In this document: positions 4,601 to 54,900 of the stretch, piece by piece
Position numbering within the stretch: position 1 is the first letter of the stretch
How the letters are laid out: every line of letters starts with the position of its first letter
NCBI RefSeq assembly: GCF_964204645.1
Contig: NW_027437452.1
Span: 39,400 to 103,399, forward strand
Length of the DNA: 64,000 nt
Direction: 5' to 3'
Source of the DNA: Tubulanus polymorphus
Taxonomy: Eukaryota > Animalia > Nemertea
Notes under the pieces: model-generated
Told to the model about the DNA's origin: nothing
The model's database searches: none
The model's input: only the letters and a program-made list of their open reading frames with translations
Position numbers and translations under genes: made by a program

Positions 4601-7600
4601 TCCTGACGATTTGAGCGCTTTTACGCATCGACATTGTCGTTTTCCCGATAGGGGGAATATTTGATACGAAAACGTCTTTTCTCGCGCTGAACGACGTTTT
4701 CGGGTCGAAAAGTGCTTTTCCTGACGATTTGAGCGCTTTTACGCATCGACATTGTCGTTTTTCCGATAGGGGGAATATTTGATACGAAAACGTCTTTTCT
4801 CGCGGTGAACGACGTTTTCGGGTCGAAAAGTGCTTTTCCTGACGATTTGAGCGCTTTTACGCATCGACATTGTCGTTTTTTCGATAGGGGGAATATTTGA
4901 TACGAAAACGTCTTTTCTCGCGCTGAACGACGTTTTCGGGTCGAAAAGTGCTTTTCCTGACGATTTGAGCGCTTTTACGCATCGACATTGTCGTTTTTCC
5001 GATAGGGGGAATATTTGATACGAAAACGTATTTTCTCGCGCTGTACGACGTTTTCGCGTCGAAAAGTGCTTTTCCTGACGATTTGAGCGCTTTTACGCAT
5101 CGACATTGTCGTTTTTCCGATCGGGGGAATATTTGATACGAAAACGTCTTTTCTCGCGCTGTACGACGTTTTCGCGTCGAAAAGTGTTTTTCCTGACGAT
5201 TTGAGCGCTTTTACGCATCGACATTGTCGTTTTCCCGATAGGGGGAATATTTGATACGAAAACGTCTTTTCTCGCGCTGAACGACGTTTTCGGGTCGAAA
5301 AGTGCTTTTCCTGACGATTTGAGCGCTTTTACGCATCGACATTGTCGTTTTTCCGATAGGGGGAATATTTGATACGAAAACGTCTTTTCTCGCGCTGAAC
5401 GACGTTTTTGGGTCGAAAAGTGTTTTTCCTGACGATTTGAGCGCTTTTACGCATCGACATTGTCGTTTTTTCGTTAGGGGGAATATTTGATACGAAAACG
5501 TCTTTTCTCGCGCTGAACGACGTTTTCGGGTCGAAAAGTGCTCTTCCTGACGATTTGAGCGCTTTTACGCATCGACATTGTCGTTTTTCCGATAGGGGGA
5601 ATATTTGATACGAAAACGTATTTTCTCGCGCTGTACGACGTTTTCGCGTCGAAAAGTGCTTTTCCTGACGATTTGAGCGCTTTTACGCATCGACATTGTC
5701 GAATTCCCGATAGGGGGAATATTTGATACGAAAACGTCTTTTCTCGCGCTGAACGACGTTTTCGGGTCGAAAAGTGCTTTTCCTGACGATTTGAGCGCTT
5801 TTACGCATCGACATTGTCGTTTTTCCGATAGGGGGAATATTTGATACGAAAACGTATTTTCTCGCGCTGTACGACGTTTTCGCGTCGAAAAGTGCTTTTC
5901 CTGACGATTTGAGCGCTTTTACGCATCGACATTGTCGTTTTCCCGATAGGGGGAATATTTGATACGAAAACGTCTTTTCTCGCGCTGAACGACGTTTTCG
6001 GGTCGAAAAGTGCTTTTCCTGACGATTTGAGCGCTTTTACGCATCGACATTGTCGTTTTTCCGATAGGGGGAATATTTGATACGAAAACGTCTTTTCTCG
6101 CGCTGAACGACGTTTTCGGGTCGAAAAGTGCTTTTCCTGACGATTTGAGCGCTTTTACGCATCGACATTGTCGTTTTTTCGATAGGGGGAATATTTGATA
6201 CGAAAACGTCTTTTCTCGCGCTGAACGACGTTTTCGGGTCGAAAAGTGCTTTTCCTGACGATTTGAGCGCTTTTACGCATCGACATTGTCGTTTTTTCGA
6301 TAGGGGGAATATTTGATACGAAAACGTCTTTTCTCGCGCTGAACGACGTTTTCGCGTCGAAAAGTGCTTTTCCTGACGATTTGAGCGCTTTTACGCATCG
6401 ACATTGTCGTTTTTCCGATAGGGGGAATATTTGATACGAAAACGTATTTTCTCGCGCTGTACGACGTTTTCGGGTCGAAAAGTGCTTTTCCTGACGATTT
6501 GAGCGCTTTTACGCATCGACATTGTCGTTTTTTCGATAGGGGGAATATTTGATACGAAAACGTCTTTTCTCGCGCTGAACGACGTTTTCGCGTCGAAAAG
6601 TGCTTTTCCTGACGATTTGAGCGCTTTTACGCATCGACATTGTCGTTTTTCCGATAGGGGGAATATTTGATACGAAAACGTATTTTCTCGCGCTGTACGA
6701 CGTTTTCGCGTCGAAAAGTGCTTTTCCTGACGATTTGAGCGCTTTTACGCATCGACATTGTCGTTTTTCCGATCGGGGGAATATTTGATACGAAAACGTC
6801 TTTTCTCGCGCTGAACGACGTTTTCGGGTCGAAAAGTGCTTTTCCTGACGATTTGAGCGCTTTTACGCATCGACATTGTCGTTTTCCCGATAGGGGGAAT
6901 ATTTGATACGAAAACGTCTTTTCTCGCGCTGAACGACGTTTTCGGGTCGAAAAGTGCTTTTCCTGACGATTTGAGCGCTTTTACGCATCGACATTGTCGT
7001 TTTTCCGATAGGGGGAATATTTGATACGAAAACGTCTTTTCTCGCGGTGAACGACGTTTTCGGGTCGAAAAGTGCTTTTCCTGACGATTTGAGCGCTTTT
7101 ACGCATCGACATTGTCGTTTTTTCGATAGGGGGAATATTTGATACGAAAACGTCTTTTCTCGCGCTGAACGACGTTTTCGGGTCGAAAAGTGCTTTTCCT
7201 GACGATTTGAGCGCTTTTACGCATCGACATTGTCGTTTTTCCGATAGGGGGAATATTTGATACGAAAACGTATTTTCTCGCGCTGTACGACGTTTTCGCG
7301 TCGAAAAGTGCTTTTCCTGACGATTTGAGCGCTTTTACGCATCGACATTGTCGTTTTTCCGATCGGGGGAATATTTGATACGAAAACGTCTTTTCTCGCG
7401 CTGTACGACGTTTTCGCGTCGAAAAGTGTTTTTCCTGACGATTTGAGCGCTTTTACGCATCGACATTGTCGTTTTCCCGATAGGGGGAATATTTGATACG
7501 AAAACGTCTTTTCTCGCGCTGAACGACGTTTTCGGGTCGAAAAGTGCTTTTCCTGACGATTTGAGCGCTTTTACGCATCGACATTGTCGTTTTTCCGATA

Positions 7601-16600: not shown

Positions 16601-19600
16601 GCGCTGAACGACGTTTTCGGTCCGAAAAGTGCTTTTCCTGACCATTTGAGCGCTTTTACGCATCGACATTGTCGTTTTCCCGATAGGGGGAATATTTGAT
16701 ACGAAAACGTCTTTTCTCGCGCTGAACGACGTTTTCGGGTCGAAAAGTGCTTTTCCTGACGATTTGAGCGCTTTTATGCATCGACATTGTCGTTTTTCCG
16801 ATAGGGGGAATATTTGATACGAAAACGTCTTTTCTCGCGCTGAACGACGTTTTCGGGTCGAAAAGTGCTTTTCCTGACGATTTGAGCGCTTTTATGCATC
16901 GACATTGTCGTTTTTTCGATAGGGGGAATATTTGATACGAAAACGTCTTTTCTCGCGCTGAACGACGTTTTCGCGTCGAAAAGTGCTTTTCCTGACGATT
17001 TGAGCGCTTTTACGCATCGACATTGTCGTTTTTCCGATAGGGGGAATATTTGATACGAAAACGTCTTTTCTCGCGCTGTACGACGTTTTTGCGTCGAAAA
17101 GTGCTTTTCCTGACGATTTGAGCGCTTTTACGCATCGACATTGTCGTTTTCCCGATAGGGGGAATATTTGATACGAAAACGTCTTTTCTCGCGCTGAACG
17201 ACGTTTTCGGGTCGAAAAGTGCTTTTCCTGACGATTTGAGCGCTTTTACGCATCGACATTGTCGTTTTTCCGATAGGGGGAATATTTGATACGAAAACGT
17301 CTTTTCTCGCGCTGAACGACGTTTTCGGGTCGAAAAGTGCTTTTCCTGACGATTTGAGCGCTTTTACGCATCGACATTGTCGTTTTTTCGATAGGGGGAA
17401 TATTTGATACGAAAACGTCTTTTCTCGCGCTGAACGACGTTTTCGCGTCGAAAAGTGCTTTTCCTGACGATTTGAGCGCTTTTACGCATCGACATTGTCG
17501 TTTTTCCGATAGGGGGAATATTTGATACGAAAACGTCTTTTCTCGCGCTGTACGACGTTTTTGCGTCGAAAAGTGCTTTTCCTGACGATTTGAGCGCTTT
17601 TACGCATCGACATTGTCGTTTTCCCGATAGGGGGAATATTTGATACGAAAACGTCTTTTCTCGCGCTGAACGACGTTTTCGGGTCGAAAAGTGCTTTTCC
17701 TGACGATTTGAGCGCTTTTACGCATCGACATTGTCGTTTTTCCGATAGGGGGAATATTTGATACGAAAACGTCTTTTCTCGCGCTGAACGACGTTTTCGG
17801 GTCGAAAAGTGCTTTTCCTGACGATTTGAGCGCTTTTACGCATCGACATTGTCGTTTTTTCGATAGGGGGAATATTTGATACGAAAACGTCTTTTCTCGC
17901 GCTGAACGACGTTTTCGCGTCGAAAAGTGCTTTTCCTGACGATTTGAGCGCTTTTACGCATCGACATTGTCGTTTTTCCGATAGGGGGAATATTTGATAC
18001 GAAAACGTCTTTTCTCGCGCTGTACGACGTTTTTGCGTCGAAAAGTGCTTTTCCTGACGATTTGAGCGCTTTTACGCATCGACATTGTCGTTTTCCCGAT
18101 AGGGGGAATATTTGATACGAAAACTTCTTTTCTCGCGCTGAACGACGTTTTCGGGTCGAAAAGTGCTTTTTCTGACGATTTGAGCGCTTTTACGCATCGA
18201 CATTGTCGTTTTTCCGATAGGGGGAATATTTGATACGAAAACGTCTTTTCTCGCGCTGAACGACGTTTTCGGGTCGAAAAGTGCTTTTCCTGACGATTTG
18301 AGCGCTTTTACGCATCGACATTGTCGTTTTCCCGATAGGGTGAATATTTGATACGAAAACGTCTTTTCTCGCGCTGAACGACGTTTTCGGGTCGAAAAGT
18401 GCTTTTCCTGACGATTTGAGCGCTTTTACGCATCGACATTGTCGTTTTTTCGATAGGGGGAATATTTGATACGAAAACGTCTTTTCTCGCGCTGAACGAC
18501 GTTTTCGCGTCGAAAAGTGCTTTTCCTGACGATTTGAGCGCTTTTACGCATCGACATTGTCGTTTTTCCGATAGGGGGAATATTTGATACGAAAACGTCT
18601 TTTCTCGCGCTGTACGACGTTTTTGCGTCGAAAAGTGCTTTTCCTGACGATTTGAGCGCTTTTACGCATCGACATTGTCGTTTTCCCGATAGGGGGAATA
18701 TTTGATACGAAAACGTCTTTTCTCGCGCTGAACGACGTTTTCGGTCCGAAAAGTGCTTTTCCTGACGATTTGAGCGCTTTTACGCATCGACATTGTCGTT
18801 TTCCCGATAGGGGGAATATTTGATACGAAAACGTCTTTTCTCGCGCTGAACGACGTTTTTGGGTCGAAAAGTGCTTTTCCTGACGATTTGAGCGCTTTTA
18901 CGCATCGACATTGTCGTTTTTTCGATAGGGGGAATATTTGATACGAAAACGTCTTTTCTCGCGCTGAACGACGTTTTCGCGTCGAAAAGTGCTTTTCCTG
19001 ACGATTTGAGCGCTTTTACGCATCGACATTGTCGTTTTTCCGATAGGGGGAATATTTGATACGAAAACGTCTTTTCTCGCGCTGTACGACGTTTTTGCGT
19101 CGAAAAGTGCTTTTCCTGACGATTTGAGCGCTTTTACGCATCGACATTGTCGTTTTCCCGATAGGGGGAATATTTGATACGAAAACGTCTTTTCTCGCGC
19201 TGAACGACGTTTACGGGTCGAAAAGTGCTTTTCCTGACGATTTGAGCGCTTTTACGCATCGACATTGTCGTTTTCCCGATAGGGGGAATATTTGATACGA
19301 AAACGTCTTTTCTCGCGCTGAACGACGTTTTCGGGTCGAAAAGTGCTTTTCCTGACGATTTGAGCGCTTTTACGCATCGACATTGTCGTTTTTCCGATAG
19401 GGGGAATATTTGATACGAAAACGTCTTTTCTCGCGCTGAACGACGTTTTCGGGTCGAAAAGTGCTTTTCCTGACGATTTGAGCGCTTTTACGCATCGACA
19501 TTGTCGTTTTTTCGATAGGGGGAATATTTGATACGAAAACGTCTTTTCTCGCGCTGAACGACGTTTTCGGGTCGAAAAGTGCTTTTCCTGACGATTTGAG

Positions 19601-21238
19601 CGCTTTTACGCATCGACATTGTCGTTTTTTCGATAGGGGGAATATTTGATACGAAAACGTCTTTTCTCGCGCTGAACGACGTTTTCGGGTCGAAAAGTGC
19701 TTTTCCTGACGATTTGAGCGCTTTTACGCATCGACATTGTCGTTTTCCCGATAGGGGGAATATTTGATACGAAAACGTCTTTTCTCGCGCTGAACGACGT
19801 TTTCGGGTCGAAAAGTGCTTTTCCTGACGATTTGAGCGCTTTTACGCATCGACATTGTCGTTTTTTCGATAGGGGGAATATGTGATACGAAAACGTCTTT
19901 TCTCGCGCTGAACGACGTTTTCGCGTCGAAAAGTGCTTTTCCTGACGATTTGAGCGCTTTTACGCATCGACATTGTCGTTTTTCCGATAGGGGGAATATT
20001 TGATACGAAAACGTCTTTTCTCGCGCTGTACGACGTTTTTGCGTCGAAAAGTGCTTTTCCTGACGATTTGAGCGCTTTTACGCATCGACATTGTCGTTTT
20101 CCCGATAGGGGGAATATTTGATACGAAAACGTCTTTTCTCGCGCTGAACGACGTTTTCGGTCCGAAAAGTGCTTTTCCTGACGATTTGAGCGCTTTTACG
20201 CATCGACATTGTCGTTTTCCCGATAGGGGGAATATTTGATACGAAAACGTCTTTTCTCGCGCTGAACGACGTTTTTGGGTCGAAAAGTGCTTTTCCTGAC
20301 GATTTGAGCGCTTTTACGCATCGACATTGTCGTTTTTTCGATAGGGGGAATATTTGATACGAAAACGTCTTTTCTCGCGCTGAACGACGTTTTCGCGTCG
20401 AAAAGTGCTTTTCCTGACGATTTGAGCGCTTTTACGCATCGACATTGTCGTTTTTCCGATAGGGGGAATATTTGATACGAAAACGTCTTTTCTCGCGCTG
20501 TACGACGTTTTTGCGTCGAAAAGTGCTTTTCCTGACGATTTGAGCGCTTTTACGCATCGACATTGTCGTTTTCCCGATAGGGGGAATATTTGATACGAAA
20601 ACGTCTTTTCTCGCGCTGAACGACGTTTTCGGGTCGAAAAGTGCTTTTCCTGACGATTTGAGCGCTTTTACGCATCGACATTGTCGTTTTTCCGATAGGG
20701 GGAATATTTGATACGAAAACGTCTTTTCTCGCGCTGAACGACGTTTTCGGGTCGAAAAGTGCTTTTCCTGACGATTTGAGCGCTTTTACGCATCGACATT
20801 GTCGTTTTTTCGATAGGGGGAATATTTGATACGAAAACGTCTTTTCTCGCGCTGAACGACGTTTTCGCGTCGAAAAGTGCTTTTCCTGACGATTTGAGCG
20901 CTTTTACGCATCGACATTGTCGTTTTTCCGATAGGGGGAATATTTGATACGAAAACGTCTTTTCTCGCGCTGTACGACGTTTTTGCGTCGAAAAGTGCTT
21001 TTCCTGACGATTTGAGCGCTTTTACGCATCGACATTGTCGTTTTCCCGATAGGGGGAATATTTGATACGAAAACTTCTTTTCTCGCGCTGAACGACGTTT
21101 TCGGGTCGAAAAGTGCTTTTCCTGACGATTTGAGCGCTTTTACGCATCGACATTGTCGTTTTTCCGATAGGGGGAATATTTGATACGAAAACGTCTTTTC
21201 TCGCGCTGAACGACGTTTTCGGGTCGAAAAGTGCTTTT
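1621..21238. repeat. Homogeneous 118-bp tandem satellite array, left of the insertion (~166 monomers)
   Basis: Monomer TTACGCATCGACATTGTCGTTTTTCCGATAGGGGGAATATTTGATACGAAAACGTCTTTTCTCGCGCTGAACGACGTTTTCGGGTCGAAAAGTGCTTTTCCTGACGATTTGAGCGCTT repeats with period 118 and only a few recurrent SNVs. Confidence 0.98.
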
Positions 21239-21619
21239 TGCAACAGAAAATAAGTCGGAACAAATTGTTAGATGGAAAAGGCCAAGCGCCCCAGCTGCTT
21301 GACGTTTATTTGAAAAATTATACCAAAACACGTGACAACCTAATTTGCTGTCACGTACAAAATTACAATATCATCAATCTAACAAAGAAATACAAAGTCA
21401 TACAAAACTAACTAGGTCAACCGCCCCAGCTGGATTGACCTAGTTTCTGATTTAAACAATTATCGGAAAAAATACTACGCGGTCAAACGCCCCTGCTGTT
21501 TGACCTATTTATGAATACAAGTAACTACACCACTATTACTAAGAAGTCAAACGCCCCAGCTGTTTGACCTAGTTCGGAGTAAAAAGTCCTCGATTAATCG
21601 TAAGTGGGCTATAAAAATG
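21235..21619 (-). repeat. Split direct repeat B2 (3' terminus of the element, ~385 bp)
   Basis: Identical by eye to 21875-22259 (offset 640), from TTTTTGCAACAG to GGGCTATAAAAATG. Confidence 0.95.
21305..21310 (-). terminator. Candidate AATAAA polyadenylation signal in repeat B (second copy at 21945-21950)
   Basis: TTTATT on the + strand, ~70 bp before the element's 3' end. Motif match only. Confidence 0.4.
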
Positions 21620-21687
21620 GGCTAGAAAAGATTAATCGTAAGAGGGCTAACAAATGCCGTAGGCGCAGGTAGGGGATGGAGGGTGGT

Positions 21688-21878
21688 AAAATGTTAAACT
21701 TTACGCCTGAGTTCCGGAACTGAAAAGGACGTGTTTACTTCGCGTTGATTGGCTGGTTGGCTAATAGCACGAGGGCGGCGCCACCGGCTGGTGCTATGTT
21801 GCCCGCCGGGAGAAGAACTTCATTTTCTGTCGCAAAAATGCTGATGGGCAACTGGTCATTCGCACATCTTTTGTTTTT
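21688..21878 (-). repeat. Split direct repeat A2 (internal copy, ~191 bp)
   Basis: Identical by eye to 27728-27918 (offset 6040). Abuts B1 through a shared T6 run. Confidence 0.95.
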
Positions 21879-22259
21879 TGCAACAGAAAATAAGTCGGAA
21901 CAAATTGTTAGATGGAAAAGGCCAAGCGCCCCAGCTGCTTGACGTTTATTTGAAAAATTATACCAAAACACGTGACAACCTAATTTGCTGTCACGTACAA
22001 AATTACAATATCATCAATCTAACAAAGAAATACAAAGTCATACAAAACTAACTAGGTCAACCGCCCCAGCTGGATTGACCTAGTTTCTGATTTAAACAAT
22101 TATCGGAAAAAATACTACGCGGTCAAACGCCCCTGCTGTTTGACCTATTTATGAATACAAGTAACTACACCACTATTACTAAGAAGTCAAACGCCCCAGC
22201 TGTTTGACCTAGTTCGGAGTAAAAAGTCCTCGATTAATCGTAAGTGGGCTATAAAAATG
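21875..22259 (-). repeat. Split direct repeat B1 (internal copy, immediately after the YR stop codon)
   Basis: Identical by eye to 21235-21619. The B1/A2 join reproduces the predicted circle junction. Confidence 0.95.
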
Positions 22260-22295
22260 CCACAAAGCCACCCACCTGTGGCTGAGCCCACACGA

Positions 22296-23249
22296 TCACC
22301 TCGCAATCCTTATGTATTTACGGAAGGCCTCGGAATTCCACCGGCCTGCCGCCCTAATCTGTGCGTCGGGGACTCCCCTCGATGCTGCATCGGTTGCAGC
22401 GCCGATGCGGAAGGAGTGACCCTTGAACGCCCTAGGTGACAGTTTACACCATTCCAGCAGGCACACGAGGCGACGGTCGAATGCTCGCCTTAACCACGGA
22501 GCTCCACTGCAGTCTATAAAAAGCGGGCCTGGACGCGGGCCTCGGCGCTGTAAATAAGTGGTGATAGTCGATCGGGCATCGGTAACCCTGGTCGAAAGGG
22601 AGGAAAAATCAACCTGTATGACCTGAGGGCCAACGCGTGCGCTGTGCTTAAACTTCTTTAGGACTATTTGGAGACCAAAGGCGGTGAGTGCCACGTCTTC
22701 GAGCTGTACTACACTCTGCGTTAGGGCGAGTGTCCTCGGTAAGAGCTCCCCTAGGCGGAAATAACCACAAAACGCGATGGTCATAACCGATTTCACTAAA
22801 AGGCGGTTGTAGGACAGACTTTCCGTCACAGCAAGACAGTCAAATAAACGGGCCAAAACATCTGCGGTAATTGGGAGACGAACGTCGAAACTCCGCGATA
22901 GATTTCTCGCGCCTGCTAACATTTTCTGAATGATAAATGATCGACAAGGGTCGGCTTCCCCTTTTATCTTGTGAAAATATGAAATTGCCGACAATGTCGA
23001 CGCAGTAGCTGCGGCCGACAAACCCTTTTCGTGCAAATGTGCGACGAACAAGACGATGGAATATTCTGAAAGTGGGACCAAAATTGTGATGCCCAACTGC
23101 TGGCCAAACGCGACTAGCTTACCCCAAGACCGATCATAGGCCTTCGCGGTTTCCGTCGTCAAAGCCGCTGCTAACAGGGCGTCTATAGTAGGTTTATATT
23201 TGCTGGCAGCCAAGACTGGGGAACCGGCGTAGGTTGAGGGTCGGCCCAT
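22296..23249 (-). CDS. Tyrosine recombinase (phage-integrase family) of the retrotransposon, 317 aa
   Basis: Catalytic residues R (FCGYFRLGEL), K (LKKFKHS), HxxR (GHSFRIGAAT), W and Y (GRWNSEAFRKYIR). N-terminal core-binding region (TAKAY...W...F; STLSAISYFH). Overlaps the 3' end of the RT ORF by 67 bp. Confidence 0.95.
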   Translation of the reverse strand: MGRPSTYAGSPVLAASKYKPTIDALLAAALTTETAKAYDRSWGKLVAFGQQLGITILVPLSEYSIVLFVAHLHEKGLSAAATASTLSAISYFHKIKGEADPCRSFIIQKMLAGARNLSRSFDVRLPITADVLARLFDCLAVTESLSYNRLLVKSVMTIAFCGYFRLGELLPRTLALTQSVVQLEDVALTAFGLQIVLKKFKHSARVGPQVIQVDFSSLSTRVTDARSTITTYLQRRGPRPGPLFIDCSGAPWLRRAFDRRLVCLLEWCKLSPRAFKGHSFRIGAATDAASRGVPDAQIRAAGRWNSEAFRKYIRIAR

Positions 23250-24814
23250 GGCGCTTCCATGCGAAATCGACGAAACTGGAACCGAGAAAGTAGGTCGGGT
23301 AAAATGTTATATTTTCCGGGTATATGTTCGCTAATGAAAACGATGTTAAATTTCAAACAAACAGAGACCATCTTGCGTACGAGGGTCATCATAGCCTTGT
23401 CCCGTGAAGATTGTTTATTAATAACGTGGACCACCGATTGGTTATCGGAATTAAAACATATAGTCTTATTTTTCCAATGTGCCCCCCAGATTGATAGTGC
23501 GGCAACGATTGGGTATAGTTCAAGGACCGCGATCGAACAAGACTTCCAGCTTAAAGGCCACGAACCGTGGAACCAGTGGGTGCCGTAAACGGCACCGTAA
23601 CCAAAAGCACCGGCGGAATCAGTGTACAAATTCAAACGATCGTTAGTGAGCTTACGCTCATCGATGAAAAATGATCGACCGTTAAAATTTGAAAGGAAGA
23701 CGTTCCAGACCCGGAGATCATTCTTCGCGCTCGCCGTCAGTGAAATGTGCAACGAACGGTGAGGCACGCCCACGGTGAGGTCGATCAGCCTCCTGAGAAA
23801 CGGTCGTCCCGGTACGATGACTGAGCAGGCAAAATTCAACGTCCCTAGTAGTGACTGTAACTCTCGCAAAGTCACTTTCCGTTTAGACAGGAATGTTTCC
23901 ACCAGGGCCATGCATTTTGCCAATTTATCTTCCGGCAAACGTGCCTCGTGCAAAATAGTATCGAGCATGATGCCGGCAAACGGTAGGATTTGCGACGGGC
24001 GAAAAGTTTTGACTTCCTTTATGGGTACGCCGAGCTGTTCGCATAGGTCAAGAAAATTTATCAGATCGCGGTCGCACTTAGATTTGCCCTTAGCAATAAT
24101 CAAAAAATCATCTAAAATATGTACAATGTGGGAAATCCCGAGCTTATTAATCGCAATCCATTTAATACACGACGAGAACCGGTCAAAAATCGCGCAGGAG
24201 CTGGCTGCGCCCATGGGCAGAACAGCGTCGACGTAAAAAAGACCGTCTAAAGTGAAACCCAACAGTGGTTGGTCTAACTTATGTATAGGGATTATCCTGA
24301 AAGCCGACTCTATGTCGGTCTTTGCTAGGAAAACATCGTCACCAAGGGACTTGATGATTTTAATCGCATCCTGGATTGTCGAGTATTTAATGGTGGATGC
24401 CTCCTCGGGAATAAAATCGTTTATCGACGAGCCTTCCGGGTACGATAGATGATGAATAACCCTAAAACCCCCGGAGCTTTTAGGAACTACCCCTAGGGGT
24501 GAAACGTGAATTGGGGTACCGTCCGGCATGAATGGAGTCTGAAAAGGGCCCAGAACTCTACCCGTTGCAAGCTCTTTGTTGACTCTTTCGCGTATCACGT
24601 CAGGGCGCTCCCTAGCGGACTTAAGGTTATCGACGCATTTGGTAGATGAGGGGCCAGAGAAAAAACTATCTAAGCGAAAACCCGAAGTAAAACCTTCAAT
24701 AATAATGTCACGATCCTCGGCCTTGTAATCGTAAATGTATTTTCTAAGTTCGGAAATTTTGACCGGCGTCGGCAAACTATGATTTGTAGGTGGGGTCGCT
24801 ACGTTTATGTCCAT
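23183..24814 (-). CDS. Reverse transcriptase / RNase H polyprotein (DIRS/Ngaro type), 543 aa
   Basis: RT motifs SPLGVVPK, FRVIHHLS, KTDIESAFRIIPI, LPMGAASS, HILDDF. RNase H motifs LYTDSAG, VLELYPI, SDNQSVV, HIPGKYNILPDLLSR. No protease, integrase or methyltransferase domain. Confidence 0.96.
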   Translation of the reverse strand: MDINVATPPTNHSLPTPVKISELRKYIYDYKAEDRDIIIEGFTSGFRLDSFFSGPSSTKCVDNLKSARERPDVIRERVNKELATGRVLGPFQTPFMPDGTPIHVSPLGVVPKSSGGFRVIHHLSYPEGSSINDFIPEEASTIKYSTIQDAIKIIKSLGDDVFLAKTDIESAFRIIPIHKLDQPLLGFTLDGLFYVDAVLPMGAASSCAIFDRFSSCIKWIAINKLGISHIVHILDDFLIIAKGKSKCDRDLINFLDLCEQLGVPIKEVKTFRPSQILPFAGIMLDTILHEARLPEDKLAKCMALVETFLSKRKVTLRELQSLLGTLNFACSVIVPGRPFLRRLIDLTVGVPHRSLHISLTASAKNDLRVWNVFLSNFNGRSFFIDERKLTNDRLNLYTDSAGAFGYGAVYGTHWFHGSWPLSWKSCSIAVLELYPIVAALSIWGAHWKNKTICFNSDNQSVVHVINKQSSRDKAMMTLVRKMVSVCLKFNIVFISEHIPGKYNILPDLLSRFQFRRFRMEAPWADPQPTPVPQSWLPANINLL

Positions 24815-25748
24815 TCGAGGGGCTGGGCGTTTTCCGACGCGGACAGCGAGCGGCTGAATGTGGGCCTCTGCATAACTTGCATTGGTGGGCGTATATGCAA
24901 GATTTTCGGGGACAGGACGAGGCGGCGCTATTAAACGCGTAGCAGAAATTGACTGCCTGGCCCGAAGATGCTCGAAAGGGCCGTTTCAAGTTATTATTTC
25001 GAGTCTTCGCTTCCAACCACAGCTCCCAATTGGTGGCGTCCCACCTACCGGCGACATCTGAAGCCGCACGGAGCGCACGAAAATTCTGGTCGTAAAACGC
25101 CCAATCCCCGCCCTGGGACGCAAGGTTCTGGACGCTTCGACCGTACTTGATCAGAGGTATGGCGTCATGAGGATGACGGCGCAAATGGACAGTAGAAAAG
25201 ATTTCGAATGCCCTTACCCACTGCTCGATCGACTTAATGGCTGTAAGCCTGGGTGTCGCTATAGATACGTGAGGCGTTTCCTGACCAGGGGCGGGCAGCA
25301 CGTTAAAGGAATACGCCGCATCGGGCTTGCGCAAAAGCACCGCGAAATCCAGCCATTTTCCTGACCAAATAGATTCTTTTATCTTAACCGGCACTAACGC
25401 ATCCAATGCCACCGCGGCGGGCAGAAAAGACCCCGGGCCGCTCAACTGTGGTTGTTGATAAAAACCCATACCATCGGGGATGATATTACCTGCTTCCGGC
25501 GCTGCCACATCCAAGGCCTGTGGTACTGTTATGGTCCCCTGCTGAGGCGTATTCTCAGCCTGCTGAGGTGTATTTGCAGCGGTGTTTGCAGGGATGGCGT
25601 TGACCTGGGGTAACAAAGAGACCGCTCTTTCGAGAGTCTCCAGCAGGCGGTCTGCCCGAGCCTCCTTCTCTGAGATAGCCCCAGCTGGCGCTTTCCTCCG
25701 CTTGTTTAAGGCTGGGGTTGCCTGTTGCTTTCTCTTGGTGCGCTGCAT
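24777..25748 (-). CDS. Gag-like nucleic-acid-binding protein with C-terminal CCCH and CCHC zinc fingers, 323 aa
   Basis: Lies upstream of RT and overlaps it by 38 bp. Basic N-terminus (KRKQ, KRRK), W..YD..FR motif, and C-X9-C-X4-C-X3-H followed by C-X2-C-X3-H-X4-C (CYAFNSAASSCPRKSCIYAHQCKLCRGPHSAARC). Confidence 0.85.
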   Translation of the reverse strand: MQRTKRKQQATPALNKRRKAPAGAISEKEARADRLLETLERAVSLLPQVNAIPANTAANTPQQAENTPQQGTITVPQALDVAAPEAGNIIPDGMGFYQQPQLSGPGSFLPAAVALDALVPVKIKESIWSGKWLDFAVLLRKPDAAYSFNVLPAPGQETPHVSIATPRLTAIKSIEQWVRAFEIFSTVHLRRHPHDAIPLIKYGRSVQNLASQGGDWAFYDQNFRALRAASDVAGRWDATNWELWLEAKTRNNNLKRPFRASSGQAVNFCYAFNSAASSCPRKSCIYAHQCKLCRGPHSAARCPRRKTPSPSNGHKRSDPTYKS

Positions 25749-25819
25749 TACTACTCTATATGACTACTAAAACACAAAATACGTGCGGGTTATTAACTGT
25801 ATCAGTATTATGAATAAGA

Positions 25820-26610
25820 CCTGCCTACTGCCGGCAGCAGGAAAATTAAGCCCTAATATTAATGATTATTTCGTGGGCACCTGCCCAGAAGCAGGAAAAT
25901 TAAGCCCTTATACTAATTATTATTTCCTGGGCACCTGCCCAGAAGCAGGAAAATTAAGCCCTTATACTAATTATTATTTCCTGGGCACCTGCCCAGAAGC
26001 AGGAAAATTAAGCCCTAATATTAATGATTATCTCGTTGGCACCTGCCCAGAAGCAGGAAAATTAAGCCCTAATATTAATGATTATTTCGTGGGCACCTGC
26101 CCAGAAGCAGGAAAATTAAGCCCTTATACTAATTATTATTTTCCTGGGCACCTGCCCAGAAGCAGGAAAATTAAGCCCTAATATTAATGATTATCTCGTT
26201 GGCACCTGCCCAGAAGCAGGAAAATTAAGCCCTAATATTGATGATTAATTCGTAGGCACCTGCCCAGAAGCAGGAAAATTAAGCCCTTATACTAATTATT
26301 ATTTCCTGGGCACCTGCCCAGAAGCAGGAAAATTAAGCCCTTATGTTAATGATTGTCTCGTGGGCACCTGCCCAGAAGCAGGAAAATTAAGCCCAATATT
26401 AATGATTATATCGTGGTAACCCGCCCAGAAGCAGGAAAATTAAGCCCAATATTCATGATTAATTATCCCATGGGCACCTGCCTAGAAGCAGGGAAATTAA
26501 GCCCTATATCAATATGTATCACAGGAAAATTAAGCCCTCATATTAAACATTTATTCATGGGCACCTGCCCCGAAGCAGGAAAATTAAGCCCGATATTAAT
26601 GCTTATCTCC
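25820..26610. repeat. Internal 54-bp minisatellite (~15 copies) between the SGNH ORF and gag
   Basis: The core GCAGGAAAATTAAGCCC, or a close variant, recurs at 25837, 25891, 25945, 25999, 26053, 26107, 26162, 26216, 26270, 26324, 26378, 26431, 26488, 26521 and 26575. Degenerate copies continue to ~26750. Confidence 0.93.
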
Positions 26611-26944
26611 TGGGACCTCCAGTACAGTAGCATATTCTAAAAACCTTTATGGTAATGATCGGGAAAAATGCACGCCCTAATCAATGGTTATTGCAGGATT
26701 AGGAAAATTCCATGGGCCCCTGGCCAGAGGCAGGCAAAATTCAACCTTTCATCAATGAAGACCAGGTAAAAAACTTAAAGGTAATAACGTGCATAGAAAC
26801 ATCAAACTGTATCATTTCTGAGCATCCGAGCATTAAGTTATAGGCTCAAGGATTACTGAGTACGTAAACTATATATATATATTTAAGGAGGCTATATGAA
26901 TCACTAATTTATTTATTTATATGTTAACGAATACTATATAAATC

Positions 26945-26970
26945 TTTTTTTTTTTTTTTTTTTTTTTTTT
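26945..26970 (-). repeat. Poly(A)26 tract (T26 on the + strand) ~55 bp downstream of the SGNH stop codon
   Basis: 26 consecutive T. AATAAA motifs on the minus strand follow it at 26908-26917. Confidence 0.9.
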
Positions 26971-27025
26971 AATACTATACAAGCAGTTATGTATGTGTGT
27001 CCATATCACTACGTATTTCCATGCT

Positions 27026-27646
27026 TCAGACCCTTTCACTCCTATTAGTCCCGAGACACTTCCCGGCCTTAACCATCGCCCCACGGAGTGACCGATATAG
27101 TTTAATGTTGCCCTGTTTGTTCAAGTGAACTAGATCCCCACCATACAGATTATATCTAGAATTCCAAAACCCCCGATGCCGCCAGGAAAATATCTTTCCG
27201 CACCCTGTACAAGCGGCGTGCAGAAATTCCTGCGCTTGTCTAACCCTACTATTCCCAGTAATTTCGTTAAAACTGCGCCATCTCTGGCGGCGAATAGGGT
27301 CACATATATACACAACAGCACCCGTACGCTCGACAATGGTATTAGCGTATTGAAATATTTTCATTCCAACAAACGCTGGGGTTAGATACCGGTTATCTAG
27401 GTCGTTTGACCCAATCTGCAGCAAAACTAATGTAGGCCGCTGCTCACAGATCAATGAGAGCACATCACGGTTTATCAAACTATCTATTGTTGCTCCCCCA
27501 ATACCGATCAAATGAGGTGCCGCAAAGTCTAAACCAGCTAGACCCCAATCGGAATTAACAATAGAGGAAGCAGAACTATTCTCTCTCACAAAATCACCCA
27601 GGCGCCTGATATAACTATGGCCTACGACTACAATGTTCTTAGACAT
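27026..27646 (-). CDS. SGNH/GDSL-family hydrolase (esterase/lipase-like), 206 aa, element-encoded
   Basis: All four SGNH blocks are present: I VVVGHSY (catalytic Ser), II GIGGAT, III LQIGSNDL, V DLVHLN (DxxH). Lies inside the element boundaries, directly after A1. Confidence 0.88.
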   Translation of the reverse strand: MSKNIVVVGHSYIRRLGDFVRENSSASSIVNSDWGLAGLDFAAPHLIGIGGATIDSLINRDVLSLICEQRPTLVLLQIGSNDLDNRYLTPAFVGMKIFQYANTIVERTGAVVYICDPIRRQRWRSFNEITGNSRVRQAQEFLHAACTGCGKIFSWRHRGFWNSRYNLYGGDLVHLNKQGNIKLYRSLRGAMVKAGKCLGTNRSERV

Positions 27647-27727
27647 CCTATCTAAAAATACCGGTATACAAAATTATCGGATGAGTACGTAAAAAAAGGA
27701 TAATTAACGATTAAAAAAGGAGAAATG

Positions 27728-27918
27728 AAAATGTTAAACTTTACGCCTGAGTTCCGGAACTGAAAAGGACGTGTTTACTTCGCGTTGATTGGCTGGTTGG
27801 CTAATAGCACGAGGGCGGCGCCACCGGCTGGTGCTATGTTGCCCGCCGGGAGAAGAACTTCATTTTCTGTCGCAAAAATGCTGATGGGCAACTGGTCATT
27901 CGCACATCTTTTGTTTTT
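27728..27918 (-). repeat. Split direct repeat A1 (5' terminus of the element)
   Basis: Identical by eye to 21688-21878. The satellite resumes at CCTGACG (27919). Confidence 0.95.
27750..27820 (-). promoter_or_regulatory. Putative Pol II promoter within repeat A
   Basis: GC box GGGCGG (27813-27818), CCAAT on the minus strand (27788-27792), Inr-like TCAGTT (27763-27758) overlapping the 12-bp palindrome AGTTCCGGAACT. Motif-level evidence only. Confidence 0.4.
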
Positions 27919-30900
27919 CCTGACGATTTGAGCGCTTTTACGCATCGACATTGTCGTTTTCCCGATAGGGTGAATATTTGATACGAAAACGTCTTTTCTC
28001 GCGCTGAACGACGTTTTCGGGTCGAAAAGTGCTTTTCCTGACGATTTGAGCGCTTTTACGCATCGACATTGTCGTTTTTTCGATAGGGGGAATATTTGAT
28101 ACGAAAACGTCTTTTCTCGCGCTGAACGACGTTTTCGCGTCGAAAAGTGCTTTTCCTGACGATTTGAGCGCTTTTACGCATCGACATTGTCGTTTTTCCG
28201 ATAGGGGGAATATTTGATACGAAAACGTCTTTTCTCGCGCTGTACGACGTTTTTGCGTCGAAAAGTGCTTTTCCTGACGATTTGAGCGCTTTTACGCATC
28301 GACATTGTCGTTTTCCGGATAGGGGGAATATTTGATACGAAAACGTCTTTTCTCGCGCTGAACGACGTTTTCGGTCCGAAAAGTGCTTTTCCTGACGATT
28401 TGAGCGCTTTTACGCATCGACATTGTCGTTTTCCCGATAGGGGGAATATTTGATACGAAAACGTCTTTTCTCGCGCTGAACGACGTTTTTGGGTCGAAAA
28501 GTGCTTTTCCTGACGATTTGAGCGCTTTTACGCATCGACATTGTCGTTTTTTCGATAGGGGGAATATTTGATACGAAAACGTCTTTTCTCGCGCTGAACG
28601 ACGTTTTCGCGTCGAAAAGTGCTTTTCCTGACGATTTGAGCGCTTTTACGCATCGACATTGTCGTTTTTCCGATAGGGGGAATATTTGATACGAAAACGT
28701 CTTTTCTCGCGCTGTACGACGTTTTTGCGTCGAAAAGTGCTTTTCCTGACGATTTGAGCGCTTTTACGCATCGACATTGTCGTTTTCCCGATAGGGGGAA
28801 TATTTGATACGAAAACGTCTTTTCTCGCGCTGAACGACGTTTACGGGTCGAAAAGTGCTTTTCCTGACGATTTGAGCGCTTTTACGCATCGACATTGTCG
28901 TTTTTCCGATAGGGGGAATATTTGATACGAAAACGTCTCTTCTCGCGCTGAACGACGTTTTCGGGTCGAAAAGTGCTTTTCCTGACGATTTGAGCGCTTT
29001 TACGCATCGACATTGTCGTTTTTCCGATAGGGGGAATATTTGATACGAAAACGTCTTTTCTCGCGCTGAACGACGTTTTCGCGTCGAAAAGTGCTTTTCC
29101 TGACGATTTGAGCGCTTTTACGCATCGACATTGTCGTTTTTCCGATAGGGGGAATATTTGATACGAAAACGTCTTTTCTCGCGCTGAACGACGTTTTCGG
29201 GTCGAAAAGTGCTTTTCCTGACGATTTGAGCGCTTTTACGCATCGACTTTGTCGTTTTTTCGATAGGGGGAATATTTGATACGAAAACGTCTTTTCTCGC
29301 GCTGAACGACGTTTTCGGGTCGAAAAGTGCTTTTCCTGACGATTTGAGCGCTTTTACGCATCGACATTGTCGTTTTTTCGATAGGGGGAATATGTGATAC
29401 GAAAACGTCTTTTCTCGCGCTGAACGACGTTTTCGCGTCGAAAAGTGCTTTTCCTGACGATTTGAGCGCTTTTACGCATCGACATTGTCGTTTTTCCGAT
29501 AGGGGGAATATTTGATACGAAAACGTCTTTTCTCGCGCTGTACGACGTTTTTGCGTCGAAAAGTGCTTTTCCTGACGATTTGAGCGCTTTTACGCATCGA
29601 CATTGTCGTTTTCCCGATAGGGGGAATATTTGATACGAAAACGTCTTTTCTCGCGCTGAACGACGTTTTCGGTCCGAAAAGTGCTTTTCCTGACGATTTG
29701 AGCGCTTTTACGCATCGACATTGTCGTTTTCCCGATAGGGGGAATATTTGATACGAAAACGTCTTTTCTCGCGCTGAACGACGTTTTTGGGTCGAAAAGT
29801 GCTTTTCCTGACGATTTGAGCGCTTTTACGCATCGACATTGTCGTTTTTCCGATAGGGGGAATATTTGATACGAACACGTCTTTTCTCGCGCTGTACGAC
29901 GTTTTTGCGTCGAAAAGTGCTTTTCCTGACGATTTGAGCGCTTTTACGCATCGACATTGTCGTTTTCCCGATAGGGGGAATATTTGATACGAAAACGTCT
30001 TTTCTCGCGCTGAACGACGTTTTCGGGTCGAAAAGTGCTTTTCCTGACGATTTGAGCGCTTTTACGCATCGACATTGTCGTTTTTCCGATAGGGGGAATA
30101 TTTGATACGAAAACGTCTTTTCTCGCGCTGTACGACGTTTTTGCGTCGAAAAGTGCTTTTCCTGACGATTTGAGCGCTTTTACGCATCGACATTGTCGTT
30201 TTCCGGATAGGGGGAATATTTGATACGAAAACGTCTTTTCTCGCGCTGAACGACGTTTTCGGTCCGAAAAGTGCTTTTCCTGACGATTTGAGCGCTTTTA
30301 CGCATCGACATTGTCGTTTTCCCGATAGGGGGAATATTTGATACGAAAACGTCTTTTCTCGCGCTGAACGACGTTTTTGGGTCGAAAAGTGCTTTTCCTG
30401 ACGATTTGAGCGCTTTTACGCATCGACATTGTCGTTTTTTCGATAGGGGGAATATTTGATACGAAAACGTCTTTTCTCGCGCTGAACGACGTTTTCGCGT
30501 CGAAAAGTGCTTTTCCTGACGATTTGAGCGCTTTTACGCATCGACATTGTCGTTTTTCCGATAGGGGGAATATTTGATACGAAAACGTCTTTTCTCGCGC
30601 TGTACGACGTTTTTGCGTCGAAAAGTGCTTTTCCTGACGATTTGAGCGCTTTTACGCATCGACATTGTCGTTTTCCCGATAGGGGGAATATTTGATACGA
30701 AAACGTCTTTTCTCGCGCTGAACGACGTTTACGGGTCGAAAAGTGCTTTTCCTGACGATTTGAGCGCTTTTACGCATCGACATTGTCGTTTTTCCGATAG
30801 GGGGAATATTTGATACGAAAACGTCTCTTCTCGCGCTGAACGACGTTTTCGGGTCGAAAAGTGCTTTTCCTGACGATTTGAGCGCTTTTACGCATCGACA

Positions 30901-51900: not shown

Positions 51901-54900
51901 TTGTCGTTTTCCGGATAGGGGGAATATTTGATACGAAAACGTCTTTTCTCGCGCTGAACGACGTTTTCGGTCCGAAAAGTGCTTTTCCTGACCATTTGAG
52001 CGCTTTTACGCATCGACATTGTCGTTTTCCCGATAGGGGGAATATTTGATACGAAAACGTCTTTTCTCGCGCTGAACGACGTTTTCGGGTCGAAAAGTGC
52101 TTTTCCTGACGATTTGAGCGCTTTTACGCATCGACATTGTCGTTTTTCCGATAGGGGGAATATTTGAGACGAAAACGTCTTTTCTCGCGCTGAACGACGT
52201 TTTCGGGTCGAAAAGTGCTTTTCCTGACGATTTGAGCGCTTTTACGCATCGACATTGTCGTTTTTTCGATAGGGGGAATATTTGATACGAAAACGTCTTT
52301 TCTCGCGCTGAACGACGTTTTCGCGTCGAAAAGTGCTTTTCCTGACGATTTGAGCGCTTTTACGCATCGACATTGTCGTTTTTCCGATAGGGGGAATATT
52401 TGATACGAAAACGTCTTTTCTCGCGCTGTACGACGTTTTCGCGTCGAAAAGTGCTTTTCCTGACGATTTGAGCGCTTTTACGCATCGACATTGTCGTTTT
52501 TTCGATAGGGGGAATATTTGATACGAAAACGTCTTTTCTCGCGCTGAACGACGTTTTCGCGTCGAAAAGTGCTTTTCCTGACGATTTGAGCGCTTTTACG
52601 CATCGACATTGTCGTTTTTCCGATAGGGGGAATATTTGATACGAAAACGTCTTTTCTCGCGCTGTACGACGTTTTTGCGTCGAAAAGTGCTTTTCCTGAC
52701 GATTTGAGCGCTTTTACGCATCGACATTGTCGTTTTCCGGATAGGGGGAATATTTGATACGAAAACGTCTTTTCTCGCGCTGAACGACGTTTTCGGTCCG
52801 AAAAGTGCTTTTCCTGACGATTTGAGCGCTTTTACGCATCGGGGGAATATTTGATACGAAAACGTCTTTTCTCGCGCTGAACGACGTTTTTGCGTCGAAA
52901 AGTGCTTTTCCTGACGATTTGAGCGCTTTTACGCATCGACATTGTCGTTTTCCCGATAGGGGGAATATTTGATACGAAAACGTCTTTTCTCGCGCTGAAC
53001 GACGTTTACGGGTCGAAAAGTGCTTTTCCTGACGATTTGAGCGCTTTTACGCATCGACATTGTCGTTTTTCCGATAGGGGGAATATTTGATATGAAAACG
53101 TCTCTTCTCGCGCTGAACGACGTTTTCGGGTCGAAAAGTGCTTTTCCTGACGATTTGAGCGCTTTTACGCATCGACATTGTCGTTTTTTCGATAGGGGGA
53201 ATATTTGATACGAAAACGTCTTTTCTCGCGCTGAACGACGTTTTCGCGTCGAAAAGTGCTTTACCTGACGATTTGAGCGCTTTTACGCATCGACATTGTC
53301 GTTTTTCCGATAGGGGGAATATTTGATACGAAAACGTCTTTTCTCGCGCTGTACGACGTTTTTGCGTCGAAAAGTGCTTTTCCTGACGATTTGAGCGCTT
53401 TTACGCATCGACATTGTCGTTTTCCCGATAGGGGGAATATTTGATACGAAAACTTCTTTTCTCGCGCTGAACGACGTTTTCGGGTCGAAAAGTGCTTTTC
53501 CTGACGACTTGAGCGCTTTTACGCATCGACATTGTCGTTTTTCCGATAGGGGGAATATTTGATACGAAAACGTATTTTCTCGCGCTGTACGAAGTTTTCG
53601 CGTCGAAAAGTGCTTTTCCTGACGATTTGAGCGCTTTTACGCATCGACATTGTCGTTTTTCCGATCGGGGGAATATTTGATACGAAAACGTCTTTTCTCG
53701 CGCTGTACGACGTTTTCGCGTCGAAAAGTGTTTTTCCTGACGATTTGAGCGCTTTTACGCATCGACATTGTCGTTTTCCCGATAGGGGGAATATTTGATA
53801 CGAAAACGTCTCTTCTCGCGCTGAACGACGTTTTCGGGTCGAAAAGTGCTTTTCCTGACGATTTGAGCGCTTTTACGCATCGACATTGTCGTTTTTCCGA
53901 TAGGGGGAATATTTGATACGAAAACGTCTTTTCTCGCGCTGTACGACGTTTTTGCGTCGAAAAGTGCTTTTCCTGACGATTTGAGCGCTTTTACGCATCG
54001 ACATTGTCGTTTTCCGGATAGGGGGAATATTTGATACGAAAACGTCTTTTCTCGCGCTGAACGACGTTTTCGGTCCGAAAAGTGCTTTTCCTGACCATTT
54101 GAGCGCTTTTACGCATCGACATTGTCGTTTTCCCGATAGGGGGAATATTTGATACGAAAACGTCTTTTCTCGCGCTGAACGACGTTTTCGGGTCGAAAAG
54201 TGCTTTTCCTGACGATTTGAGCGCTTTTACGCATCGACATTGTCGTTTTTCCGATAGGGGGAATATTTGAGACGAAAACGTCTTTTCTCGCGCTGAACGA
54301 CGTTTTCGGGTCGAAAAGTGCTTTTCCTGACGATTTGAGCGCTTTTACGCATCGACATTGTCGTTTTTTCGATAGGGGGAATATTTGATACGAAAACGTC
54401 TTTTCTCGCGCTGAACGACGTTTTCGCGTCGAAAAGTGCTTTTCCTGACGATTTGAGCGCTTTTACGCATCGACATTGTCGTTTTTCCGATAGGGGGAAT
54501 ATTTGATACGAAAACGTCTTTTCTCGCGCTGTACGACGTTTTTGCGTCGAAAAGTGCTTTTCCTGACGATTTGAGCGCTTTTACGCATCGACATTGTCGT
54601 TTTTTCGATAGGGGGAATATTTGATACGAAAACGTCTTTTCTCGCGCTGAACGACGTTTTCGCGTCGAAAAGTGCTTTTCCTGACGATTTGAGCGCTTTT
54701 ACGCATCGACATTGTCGTTTTTCCGATAGGGGGAATATTTGATACGAAAACGTCTTTTCTCGCGCTGTACGACGTTTTTGCGTCGAAAAGTGCTTTTCCT
54801 GACGATTTGAGCGCTTTTACGCATCGACATTGTCGTTTTCCGGATAGGGGGAATATTTGATACGAAAACGTCTTTTCTCGCGCTGAACGACGTTTTCGGT

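Follow-up and report, generated by a model that had tools for sequence, protein, structure and literature searches.

The window, i.e., the whole 64-kb stretch of DNA analysed here, consists of a 118-bp satellite broken by a single 6.68-kb stretch of distinct composition. The satellite array on the left of this stretch (positions 4–21238, plus strand) has a TRF period of 118 with 179.7 copies and 96% matches, and the array on the right (27915–64000, plus strand) is in phase again from CCTGACG. The interruption itself, 21239–27914, is a Ngaro-type retrotransposon on the minus strand, the only copy of the element within the window. Its order is A1, an SGNH esterase, a 54-bp tandem array, gag, RT/RNase H, a tyrosine recombinase (YR), B1, A2, a 68-nt spacer, and B2. 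Repeat A has 192 nt and occurs as the 5′ terminal copy A1 (27728–27918, minus strand, including the right junction T-run of five T at 27914–27918) and as the internal copy A2 (21688–21879, minus strand), which is exactly identical and terminates in a 6-T run (21874–21879) at the internal B1/A2 junction. Repeat B—380 nt plus the six shared T—occurs as the internal copy B1 downstream of the recombinase gene (21880–22259, minus strand) and as the terminal copy B2 at the coding-strand 3′ end (21240–21619, minus strand); B1 and B2 are exactly identical, and B2 contains four palindromic hairpin motifs (z = −4 to −6 in three of them). The unique 68-nt spacer between A2 and B2 (21620–21687, minus strand) was delimited by sequence reading and the repeat limits.

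All four minus-strand ORFs are uninterrupted. The first is the SGNH/GDSL esterase ORF (206 aa, 27026–27646), separated from gag by an internal array of ~14 tandem 54-bp units (25836–26613, from tandem-repeat detection) that has fewer units in older family copies. The gag-like ORF (323 aa, 24777–25748) precedes RT, as it does in relatives, and is followed by the RT/RNase H ORF (543 aa, 23183–24814) and the YR ORF (317 aa, 22296–23249). With these ORFs open, the catalytic residues in place, and A1 and B1 identical to A2 and B2, the element is intact, as the initial annotation had claimed.

RT matches Pfam RVT_1 with E = 4.7e-12, and a protein search yields at least 1782 RT/RNase H homologues, the closest being 71% identical and the majority 50–56%. 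The catalytic residues D167 and D235–D236 of RT are invariant across 24 homologues, and the same comparison shows D399, E432, D457, and D507 of RNase H to be invariant as well. The predicted RT/RNase H model has a pLDDT of 87.8; its Foldseek matches (E ~1e-19) are RT with RNase H from Ty3 and from the retroviruses HERV-K, foamy virus, and MMLV. YR features a Pfam Phage_int_SAM_1 match of 27 bits (cut-off 22.3) and a weak catalytic-domain match to Phage_integrase of 16.8 bits, which is under the cut-off; its C-terminal H-x-x-R, W, and Y align with H289/R292/W315/Y324 of Cre. The SGNH ORF reaches 26.3 bits in Lipase_GDSL_2, under the 32.9 cut-off, and S11, G48/G51, N81, D171, and H174 are invariant in four homologues. 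Its predicted model has a pLDDT of 83.4 with PAF acetylhydrolase Ib and sialate O-acetylesterase as top folds (TM 0.67). A word search with the esterase returned two relatives only, and a comparison with the sequences of solved structures a single weak, spurious match. The gag-like ORF bears a Cys/His knuckle-like motif at the C-terminus and has no Pfam match. Pfam detects neither an rve or endonuclease domain nor a methyltransferase domain in any of the four ORFs, and, since the 543-aa RT/RNase H ORF overlaps the YR ORF, there is no coding room for a methyltransferase.

As judged by repeat layout, domains, and junctions, the element belongs to the Ngaro type of the DIRS order. Its split direct repeats are arranged as A1-[ORFs]-B1-A2-B2, where the internal copies follow YR, and it encodes a tyrosine recombinase in place of a DDE integrase or endonuclease as well as an LTR-retroelement-type RT with RNase H; in addition, it is devoid of a methyltransferase and of a target-site duplication and has a short core common to circle junction and target. 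Ngaro elements of zebrafish (DrNgaro) and Xenopus (DIRS-53_XT/DIRS-54_XT) likewise carry gag, RT/RNase H, and YR, have no methyltransferase, and possess an extra SGNH hydrolase ORF (PMC9210276, PMC4157794). However, the hydrolase ORF follows YR in amphibian Ngaro (PMC9210276), whereas here it comes first, upstream of gag and beyond the 54-bp array. The spacer between A2 and B2 is a further difference from Ngaro. PAT-like elements of the DIRS group share the split direct repeats, RT/RNase H, and YR but carry a methyltransferase domain (PMC4157794), which was found in none of the ORFs here. DIRS-1 of Dictyostelium discoideum also has a YR, an internal circle-junction replica, and a short shared core at its flanks (PMC7192593). 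It is set apart from the present element by a methyltransferase-like domain and by inverted terminal repeats together with an internal complementary region; the number of inverted repeat pairs of at least 40 nt in 21100–28050 is zero. ORF1 of CR1-like LINEs reportedly bears an SGNH esterase domain resembling PAF acetylhydrolase, a finding attributed to Kapitonov and Jurka in 2003. These LINEs are a different retroelement class, and their esterase forms part of ORF1 as a domain, whereas that of the present element is a stand-alone first ORF; the likeness lies in PAF-AH Ib being the best fold match.

The junctions are resolved to the single base. The satellite itself has four T at the insertion site (GTGC-TTTT-CCTG), and the left junction carries a T-run of five (21235–21239), so that five T on the left and five on the right equal the six of the internal B1/A2 junction plus the four of the empty site. 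A paralogous empty site lies in the same array at 17285–19288 (plus strand): The flanks joined via TTTT (1 kb + TTTT + 1 kb) match it at 99.8% with no gap, so integration proceeded without target-site duplication. This near-identical empty site bears out the earlier reading of a young insertion. Such pairs of filled and empty sites are rare for DIRS-order elements, and this one makes the integration of an animal Ngaro visible base by base, with target DNA neither lost nor duplicated and a short core shared with the circle-junction replica—a step known to the standard model only by inference. The 5/6/5 T pattern is repeated in three other family copies; moreover, five or more T precede nearly every B terminus, and 3–5 T or more come after each A terminus. 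From the sequences, these counts fit conservative recombination of a circle within a shared TTTT core, in keeping with the core-nucleotide integration model (PMC7192593) and with Xenopus, where a TTT is present at the ends of DIRS elements (PMC9210276). In a life cycle as described by the standard DIRS/Ngaro model, reverse transcription would start from an RNA spanning A1 to B2, the internal B1/A2 junction—the circle-junction replica—would act as the template uniting the cDNA ends into a circle, and the recombinase of the element would carry out strand exchange between the circle-junction TTTTTT and a genomic T-run. The target would be a short T-run, frequently with an A-run a few bases upstream, at sites found genome-wide. 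Repeat layout, RT/RNase H and YR domains, and T-count arithmetic agree with the initial assignment as a Ngaro-like, YR-integrated element.

A census of the 268-Mb genome by termini (24 B and 26 A termini; no matches of reversed control patterns) yields ~15 young insertion events and 26 in total. The element, initially taken to occur once, does so within the window but is not single-copy in the genome. Three independent insertions lie inside the 118-bp satellite—on C35, the contig of this window, on C52, and on C4—and the satellite share of the family amounts to 12–20%. The C4 copy is located at 13.556 Mb within a 75–125-kb array, lacks 1.8 kb, and is ORF1-less. The C52 copy is opposite in orientation to the monomer. 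All four ORFs are open only in the two full-length satellite copies, the window copy having the fewest private changes; in the sole full-length copy in euchromatin, RT is frameshifted.

The array bears kb-scale duplications, and the C52 and C4 copies share site and orientation, as would be expected if a single satellite insertion had been multiplied by duplication of the array or represented twice as haplotigs. This origin is largely refuted by orientation, flanks, and the empty paralogue and is very improbable: Relative to the monomer, the window copy has the opposite orientation to C52 and C4, the C4 copy is without its 1.8 kb, and the nearest paralogue of the window site is empty. The C52 and C4 copies represent separate events because their flanks are only 94% alike, with indels, in-register comparison being no better than out-of-register comparison. 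The three copies differ, moreover, in element sequence by 0.25–0.53%, which together with orientation and flanks argues against one event counted thrice.

The satellite comprises 10,683 monomers, ~1.29 Mb, or 0.48% of the assembly. Arrays were mapped with "not-this-base" IUPAC patterns, which revealed those of C7, C9, C18, and C27, lengthened that of C1, and were uninformative for C2, C5, C6, C8, and C10–C12; a DNA-mode genome search with 10 monomers scored two of 246 candidates and was not used for mapping. On C1, C3, C4, C7, and C9, the arrays are positioned at 42–60% of the length, making the 118-bp array a candidate centromere-like repeat by position. Further transposons reside in the arrays: The C1 array contains a second, unrelated SDR-type YR element with a shared GATAG core, its RT being 20% identical, and the C3 array has a gap of 16 kb occupied by LTR-type and LINE-type ORFs. 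The presence of other retroelements, including an unrelated recombinase element, points to the arrays being a general transposon sink.

Three of 15 young events in the satellite constitute a ~40-fold excess by length (P = 4.8e-5) and a ~13-fold excess by T-run count (P = 0.0015–0.0076 when T-runs are modelled as the target). Random T-run insertion, with the three satellite insertions being a sampling accident or an assembly counting artefact, could draw on the small numbers (three events) and on the repetitive nature of the arrays, which are partly on unplaced contigs (C35, C52). However, the P values of the T-run model and the three distinct sites make chance, a possibility raised in the initial annotation, improbable. 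Under an A-run/T-run motif model, P rises to 0.035–0.13; the motif, which removes most of the excess, was defined post hoc from the sites. Relative to a background of 71 kb only, adjoining other family copies, runs of T≥4 are 3.3× denser in the satellite and the A3+ N2-7 T4+ motif is 10.7× denser. Outside the satellite, the T-run has an A-run ahead of it at six of 12 sites versus 17% of the background (P = 0.009). A C-rich base after the T-run was considered as part of the target and is nonsignificant outside the satellite (5/9, P = 0.19).

The monomer bears a good version of the target site, the quasi-palindrome GAAAAGTGCTTTTC. With ~7 T-runs available per monomer, all three satellite insertions fall into the two arms of this one quasi-palindrome, which hints at a finer recognition. 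The enrichment over the satellite's share of the genome expected by the initial annotation is present by length and is mostly explicable by motif density. Mapping by the A and B termini nevertheless places the majority of copies outside the satellite at T-runs, 12 of the 15 young events and 23 of the 26 overall. An element that targets centromeres would have most copies in the repeat, and here three of 15 young and three of 26 total insertion events are found there. The satellite is struck more than its size predicts, yet it is neither the only nor the main target of the family; the proposed satellite- or centromere-associated family is only partly supported.

The association is probably best described as a recent, coding-intact, low-copy Ngaro-type insert whose satellite excess stems from dense motifs and weak selection rather than from dedicated targeting. 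Over-representation would most likely arise because target motifs are dense and because selection against insertions is weak in a centromere-like array that tolerates transposons; a mechanism dedicated to targeting the satellite is less likely. Most of the excess can be explained by the ~3–11× motif density plus retention where other transposon types accumulate. Mere longer retention would make satellite copies look older, not younger, which counts against this explanation. If any run of T≥4 is a target, three of 15 in 0.48% remains an excess (P 0.0015).

True satellite or centromere targeting would imply that the recombinase, gag, or esterase ORF recognises GAAAAG-YR-CTTTTC or array chromatin; the satellite would then be the preferred home and reservoir of source copies, and copies elsewhere would be decaying off-target events. 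The ~40-fold and ~13-fold excesses, the use of two arms of one palindrome, and the location of both four-open-ORF copies argue for this mechanism. There are also precedents: In Dictyostelium, DIRS-1 occurs only at centromeres (PMC7192593)—a case overlooked when the initial annotation described the retroelements associated with centromeres as typically of LTR or non-LTR type—and Ngaro types of Cafeteria vary in site preference (PMC8547959). Nevertheless, targeting is doubtful given the bulk of copies outside the satellite, the reduced excess under the A-run/T-run motif, the lack of a chromodomain or other tethering domain in any of the ORFs, the unrelated transposons in the same arrays, and a second YR family with only one of its eight copies there. 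Somewhat more doubtful still is the reading that the family genuinely prefers the site GAAAAG-YR-CTTTTC in a centromeric satellite and has its only coding-intact source copies there. Such a site preference, if true, would represent an animal YR lineage persisting in centromere repeats like DIRS-1 in Dictyostelium, and it would provide a defined DNA site that can be tested in vitro.

DIRS-1 accumulates in centromeric heterochromatin (PMC7192593), its copies being nearly confined to centromeres, whereas most copies lie elsewhere here. Ngaro types of Cafeteria burkhardae have copies concentrated in one AT-rich kind of host DNA, endogenous virophages, and the preferred target takes up to 91% of a type (PMC8547959), compared with 12–20% here. 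ORF1-less variants also occur in Cafeteria (PMC8547959), and the ORF1-less copy of the present family, that of C4, sits in the satellite. None of these findings overturns current views. They illustrate in a small worked case that motif density and insertion tolerance can produce what looks like a preference for centromere-like repeats, which is useful for weighing centromere-targeting claims in new chromosome-scale assemblies. In addition, the esterase-first gene order widens the known Ngaro layouts, and the unrelated SDR-type YR element of the C1 array follows the same logic with another core, GATAG.

The 118-bp satellite array occupies 4–21238 and 27915–64000 of the window, with monomers matching at 96%, and is interrupted once, by 6.68 kb differing in GC content and strand skew. 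This insert features four ORFs on the minus strand: an esterase ORF (27646..27026, 206 aa); a gag-like ORF (25748..24777, 323 aa); an RT/RNase H ORF (24814..23183, 543 aa); and a tyrosine recombinase ORF (23249..22296, 317 aa). Along the coding strand, A1 is followed by the ORFs, B1, A2, a 68-nt spacer, and B2. The two copies of repeat A (192 nt, in the region 27728–27918 and at 21688–21879) show 0 mismatches, as do those of repeat B (380 nt, 21880–22259 and 21240–21619). The ORF and repeat analysis thereby bears out the initial annotation, which had reported a single insert with four open ORFs and identical repeat pairs. Repeat B carries four palindromic motifs with 7–11-bp arms (21281–21572 and 21921–22212) and a conserved loop-like center, CGCCCC-A/T-GCTG; in folding, three of them greatly outperform shuffled sequences (z −4 to −6). 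The motifs may represent binding sites of the recombinase or an accessory protein, or hairpins of the RNA or cDNA. Between the esterase ORF and gag lie approximately 14 tandem units of 54 bp (25836–26613), which number 8 to 10 in older family copies (stretches L026, L027, and L025). This array may act as an internal promoter, as a spacer separating two expression units, or as a small-RNA target.

In Pfam, the RT/RNase H ORF hits RVT_1 (E=4.7e-12); its homologues number over 1,700, with identities of 71% for the best and 50–56% for most. In an alignment of 24 homologues, D167, D235, and D236 of the RT and D399, E432, D457, and D507 of the RNase H are invariant. Its AlphaFold model (pLDDT 87.8) resembles full-length RT–RNase H structures of HERV-K, foamy virus, Ty3, and MMLV (E ~1e-19). 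The recombinase has a SAM-like N-domain above the Pfam cut-off and a weak catalytic domain match; aligned with Cre, H-x-x-R, W, and Y of its C-terminus fall on H289, R292, W315, and Y324. The esterase ORF matches GDSL lipase under the Pfam cut-off, and the four SGNH blocks (S11, G48/G51, N81, and D171-x-x-H174) are invariant in four homologues. Its model (pLDDT 83.4) resembles PAF acetylhydrolase Ib and sialate O-acetylesterases (TM 0.67). The gag-like ORF has no Pfam match and occupies the place of gag in relatives.

By the published feature set, the sequence of the window element belongs to the Ngaro type. A DIRS1 identity was rejected since inverted repeats (none of at least 40 nt in the element by repeat search) and the internal complementary region are absent. 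No methyltransferase, integrase, or chromodomain was found among the ORFs, and coding room for one is also absent; the lack of a methyltransferase speaks against a PAT identity. Two features depart from described Ngaro elements: the A2–B2 spacer, and the SGNH ORF in first position, whereas it lies downstream of YR in amphibian Ngaro (PMC9210276). The esterase-first order also occurs in the unrelated ENA assembly ERZ25073254 (L054–L056; RT 55% identical), where a 207-aa ORF sharing 29% identity with the esterase (E=6e-27) precedes gag, RT, and YR—with an additional 127-aa ORF between the esterase and the 500-aa gag. This layout is therefore not private to the Tubulanus polymorphus genome. Site preference differs by type in Cafeteria Ngaro (PMC8547959), and DIRS-1 is a YR element that accumulates in centromeres (PMC7192593); the literature search returned no paper on Ngaro within satellite DNA.

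The empty target in the satellite reads GTGC-TTTT-CCTG. Five T flank the window element on either side, and six lie in the internal B1|A2 junction. A 4-T target and a 6-T junction thus account for the 5-T flanks: 5 + 5 = 6 + 4. With TTTT placed between 1 kb from either flank, the resulting sequence matches window 17285–19288 at 99.8% and free of gaps, so satellite bases were neither lost nor duplicated, and an almost identical paralogous site is unoccupied. The recent insertion with an empty paralogous site, as initially proposed, holds on this evidence. Under the DIRS/Ngaro model, the internal B1|A2 junction replicates that of the circle. The T-run of the circle junction would exchange with a genomic T-run target through the common core. 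The junctions bear the hallmark of a conservative, site-specific recombination in which circle and target share a short core; the recombination product is observed directly, and we infer the circle together with its RNA and the activity of the enzyme. The element is a young, clean variant of the Ngaro type, and its junctions are well documented.

Across the assembly (267.8 Mb in 77 contigs), a search with the RT–YR region yielded seven copies at 99–100% identity, another at 95%, plus older relatives; terminal patterns recovered 24 B ends along with 26 A ends, against 0 matches for their reversed controls. The four best copies are 0.2–0.5% apart. The window copy (contig C35, where the window spans 39400–103399) and that of contig C52 are full length, lie in satellite, and have all four ORFs open. 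On contig C4, the copy at 25.27 Mb is full length and outside satellite, with a 1-nt insertion disrupting its RT frame; the one at 13.556 Mb lies in satellite and lacks 1.8 kb, comprising the esterase ORF and the bulk of the 54-bp array. Copies that are truncated or rearranged reside on C3, C4 (20.71 Mb), C10, and C12. Approximately seven T-run-flanked units of 640 bp (A–spacer–B) occur on C2, C3, C4, C6, and C8 (L030, L031, L037–L040, and L049) and are the analogue of solo LTRs, with A1 × A2 recombination as their probable origin. Those on C8 (2.35, 3.16, and 3.56 Mb) have identical flanks, indicating a segmental triplication, and were counted as one event. At least five T precede nearly every B end, and three to five or more follow every A end. 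In total, there are ~26 insertion events, ~15 of them young, that is, with termini free of mismatches. The C52 copy has one palindromic motif changed, in B1 only. Non-element DNA on the two sides of the truncated C12 copy (L027) forms a 259-nt direct repeat (2027–2285 and 6944–7202; 99% identical), which may reflect duplication of a large segment upon insertion or a recombination event involving some other repeat.

The three satellite copies are, as judged from sites and flanks, independent insertions. The window copy occupies GTGC-TTTT-CCTG on the monomer plus strand; the C52 and C4 copies, in inverted orientation with respect to the monomer, occupy GCAC-TTTT-CG, which forms the second arm of the quasi-palindrome GAAAAGTGCTTTTC. 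A single insertion behind the C52 and C4 copies was rejected: the site is the same, but the flanks are 94% alike, with indels, and match in register no better than at shifts of one to four monomers. The elements differ by 0.53% and the 1.8-kb deletion. Around the C4 copy, satellite is detected at 13.525–13.600 Mb but not at 13.500 or 13.625 Mb.

A 30-nt monomer pattern (≤3 mismatches) has 10,683 matches in the assembly which, calibrated on the window (475 matches per 57,324 bp), correspond to ~1.29 Mb of satellite, or 0.48% of the assembly. Three of the 15 young events (20%) lie inside it. This excess is real by length (P=4.8e-5; P=0.00026 for 3/26). Relative to 71 kb of non-satellite, non-element background, T runs of at least four are 3.3 times as dense in the satellite (P=0.0015 and 0.0076, respectively), and the motif A3+, 2–7 nt, T4+ is 10.7 times as dense (P=0.035 and 0.13). 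The A-run motif, chosen post hoc, is present at 6 of 12 non-satellite sites versus 17% of background T-runs (P=0.009). The wealth of good target sites in the monomer explains much of the excess, perhaps all of it. The initial annotation had suggested a satellite-associated family: its observation is confirmed and its interpretation partly supported, since the over-representation by length stands, but most mapped copies (12 of 15 young events) lie at T-runs outside satellite. The family targets T-runs genome-wide and shows moderate over-representation in a satellite that is centromere-like and tolerant of transposons.

The arrays harbor further insertions, located via two gaps in the monomer listing. 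Within the C1 array lies a second YR element with split direct repeats (7.1 kb, C1:15703054–15710189; L086:255–7390), with ORFs for an RT (730 aa, only 20% identical to that of the window element), a protein combining an ALOG domain with a zinc ribbon, and a recombinase (249 aa). Its circle-junction replica GTGTG-GATAG-TATAAT and the monomer TTTCC-GATAG-GGGGAA (CCGATAGG) have the core GATAG in common, and both products carry GATAG on each side; these junctions follow the same integration logic as the window element with a different core. One of eight young copies of its family is in satellite, and left flanks of the others end in GATAG, TATAG, TTAG, or AAAG. Inside the C3 array, a 16-kb non-satellite block (C3:16784551–16800797; L087:252–9901 and L088:1–6597) contains gag-pol ORFs with a retroviral-type aspartic protease and a LINE-like pair of APE endonuclease and RT. 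The presence of several unrelated integration machineries in the arrays favors tolerance and retention rather than a particular affinity on the part of a single family. True satellite targeting by the window element's family is unlikely, and the weakening of the excess to P 0.035–0.13 under the A-run/T-run motif points the same way; in its favor, all three satellite insertions fall in one quasi-palindrome among ~7 T-runs per monomer, both copies with all ORFs open are satellite copies, and private changes are fewest in the window copy. Such younger satellite copies run against pure retention, which predicts older ones there.

Among the contigs in the matches listed, arrays lie at 15.70–15.80 of 32.06 Mb on C1, 16.78–16.81 of 27.81 Mb on C3, 13.5–13.6 of 27.38 Mb on C4, and 6.83–6.95 of 16.48 Mb on C9; C7 has two blocks in opposite orientation, 2.4 Mb apart (10.45–10.53 and 12.89–12.94 of 21.62 Mb), and the small unplaced contigs C18, C27, C35, C52, and C58 also carry arrays. 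By position alone, this arrangement suggests a centromere-like satellite. The opposed C7 blocks may stem from an inversion across this centromere-like region or from an assembly join. Within the window, a 97-bp deletion-variant monomer occurs three times in 52626–59031, spaced 2.1 kb and 3.9 kb, a recurrence that indicates kb-scale higher-order duplications in the array.
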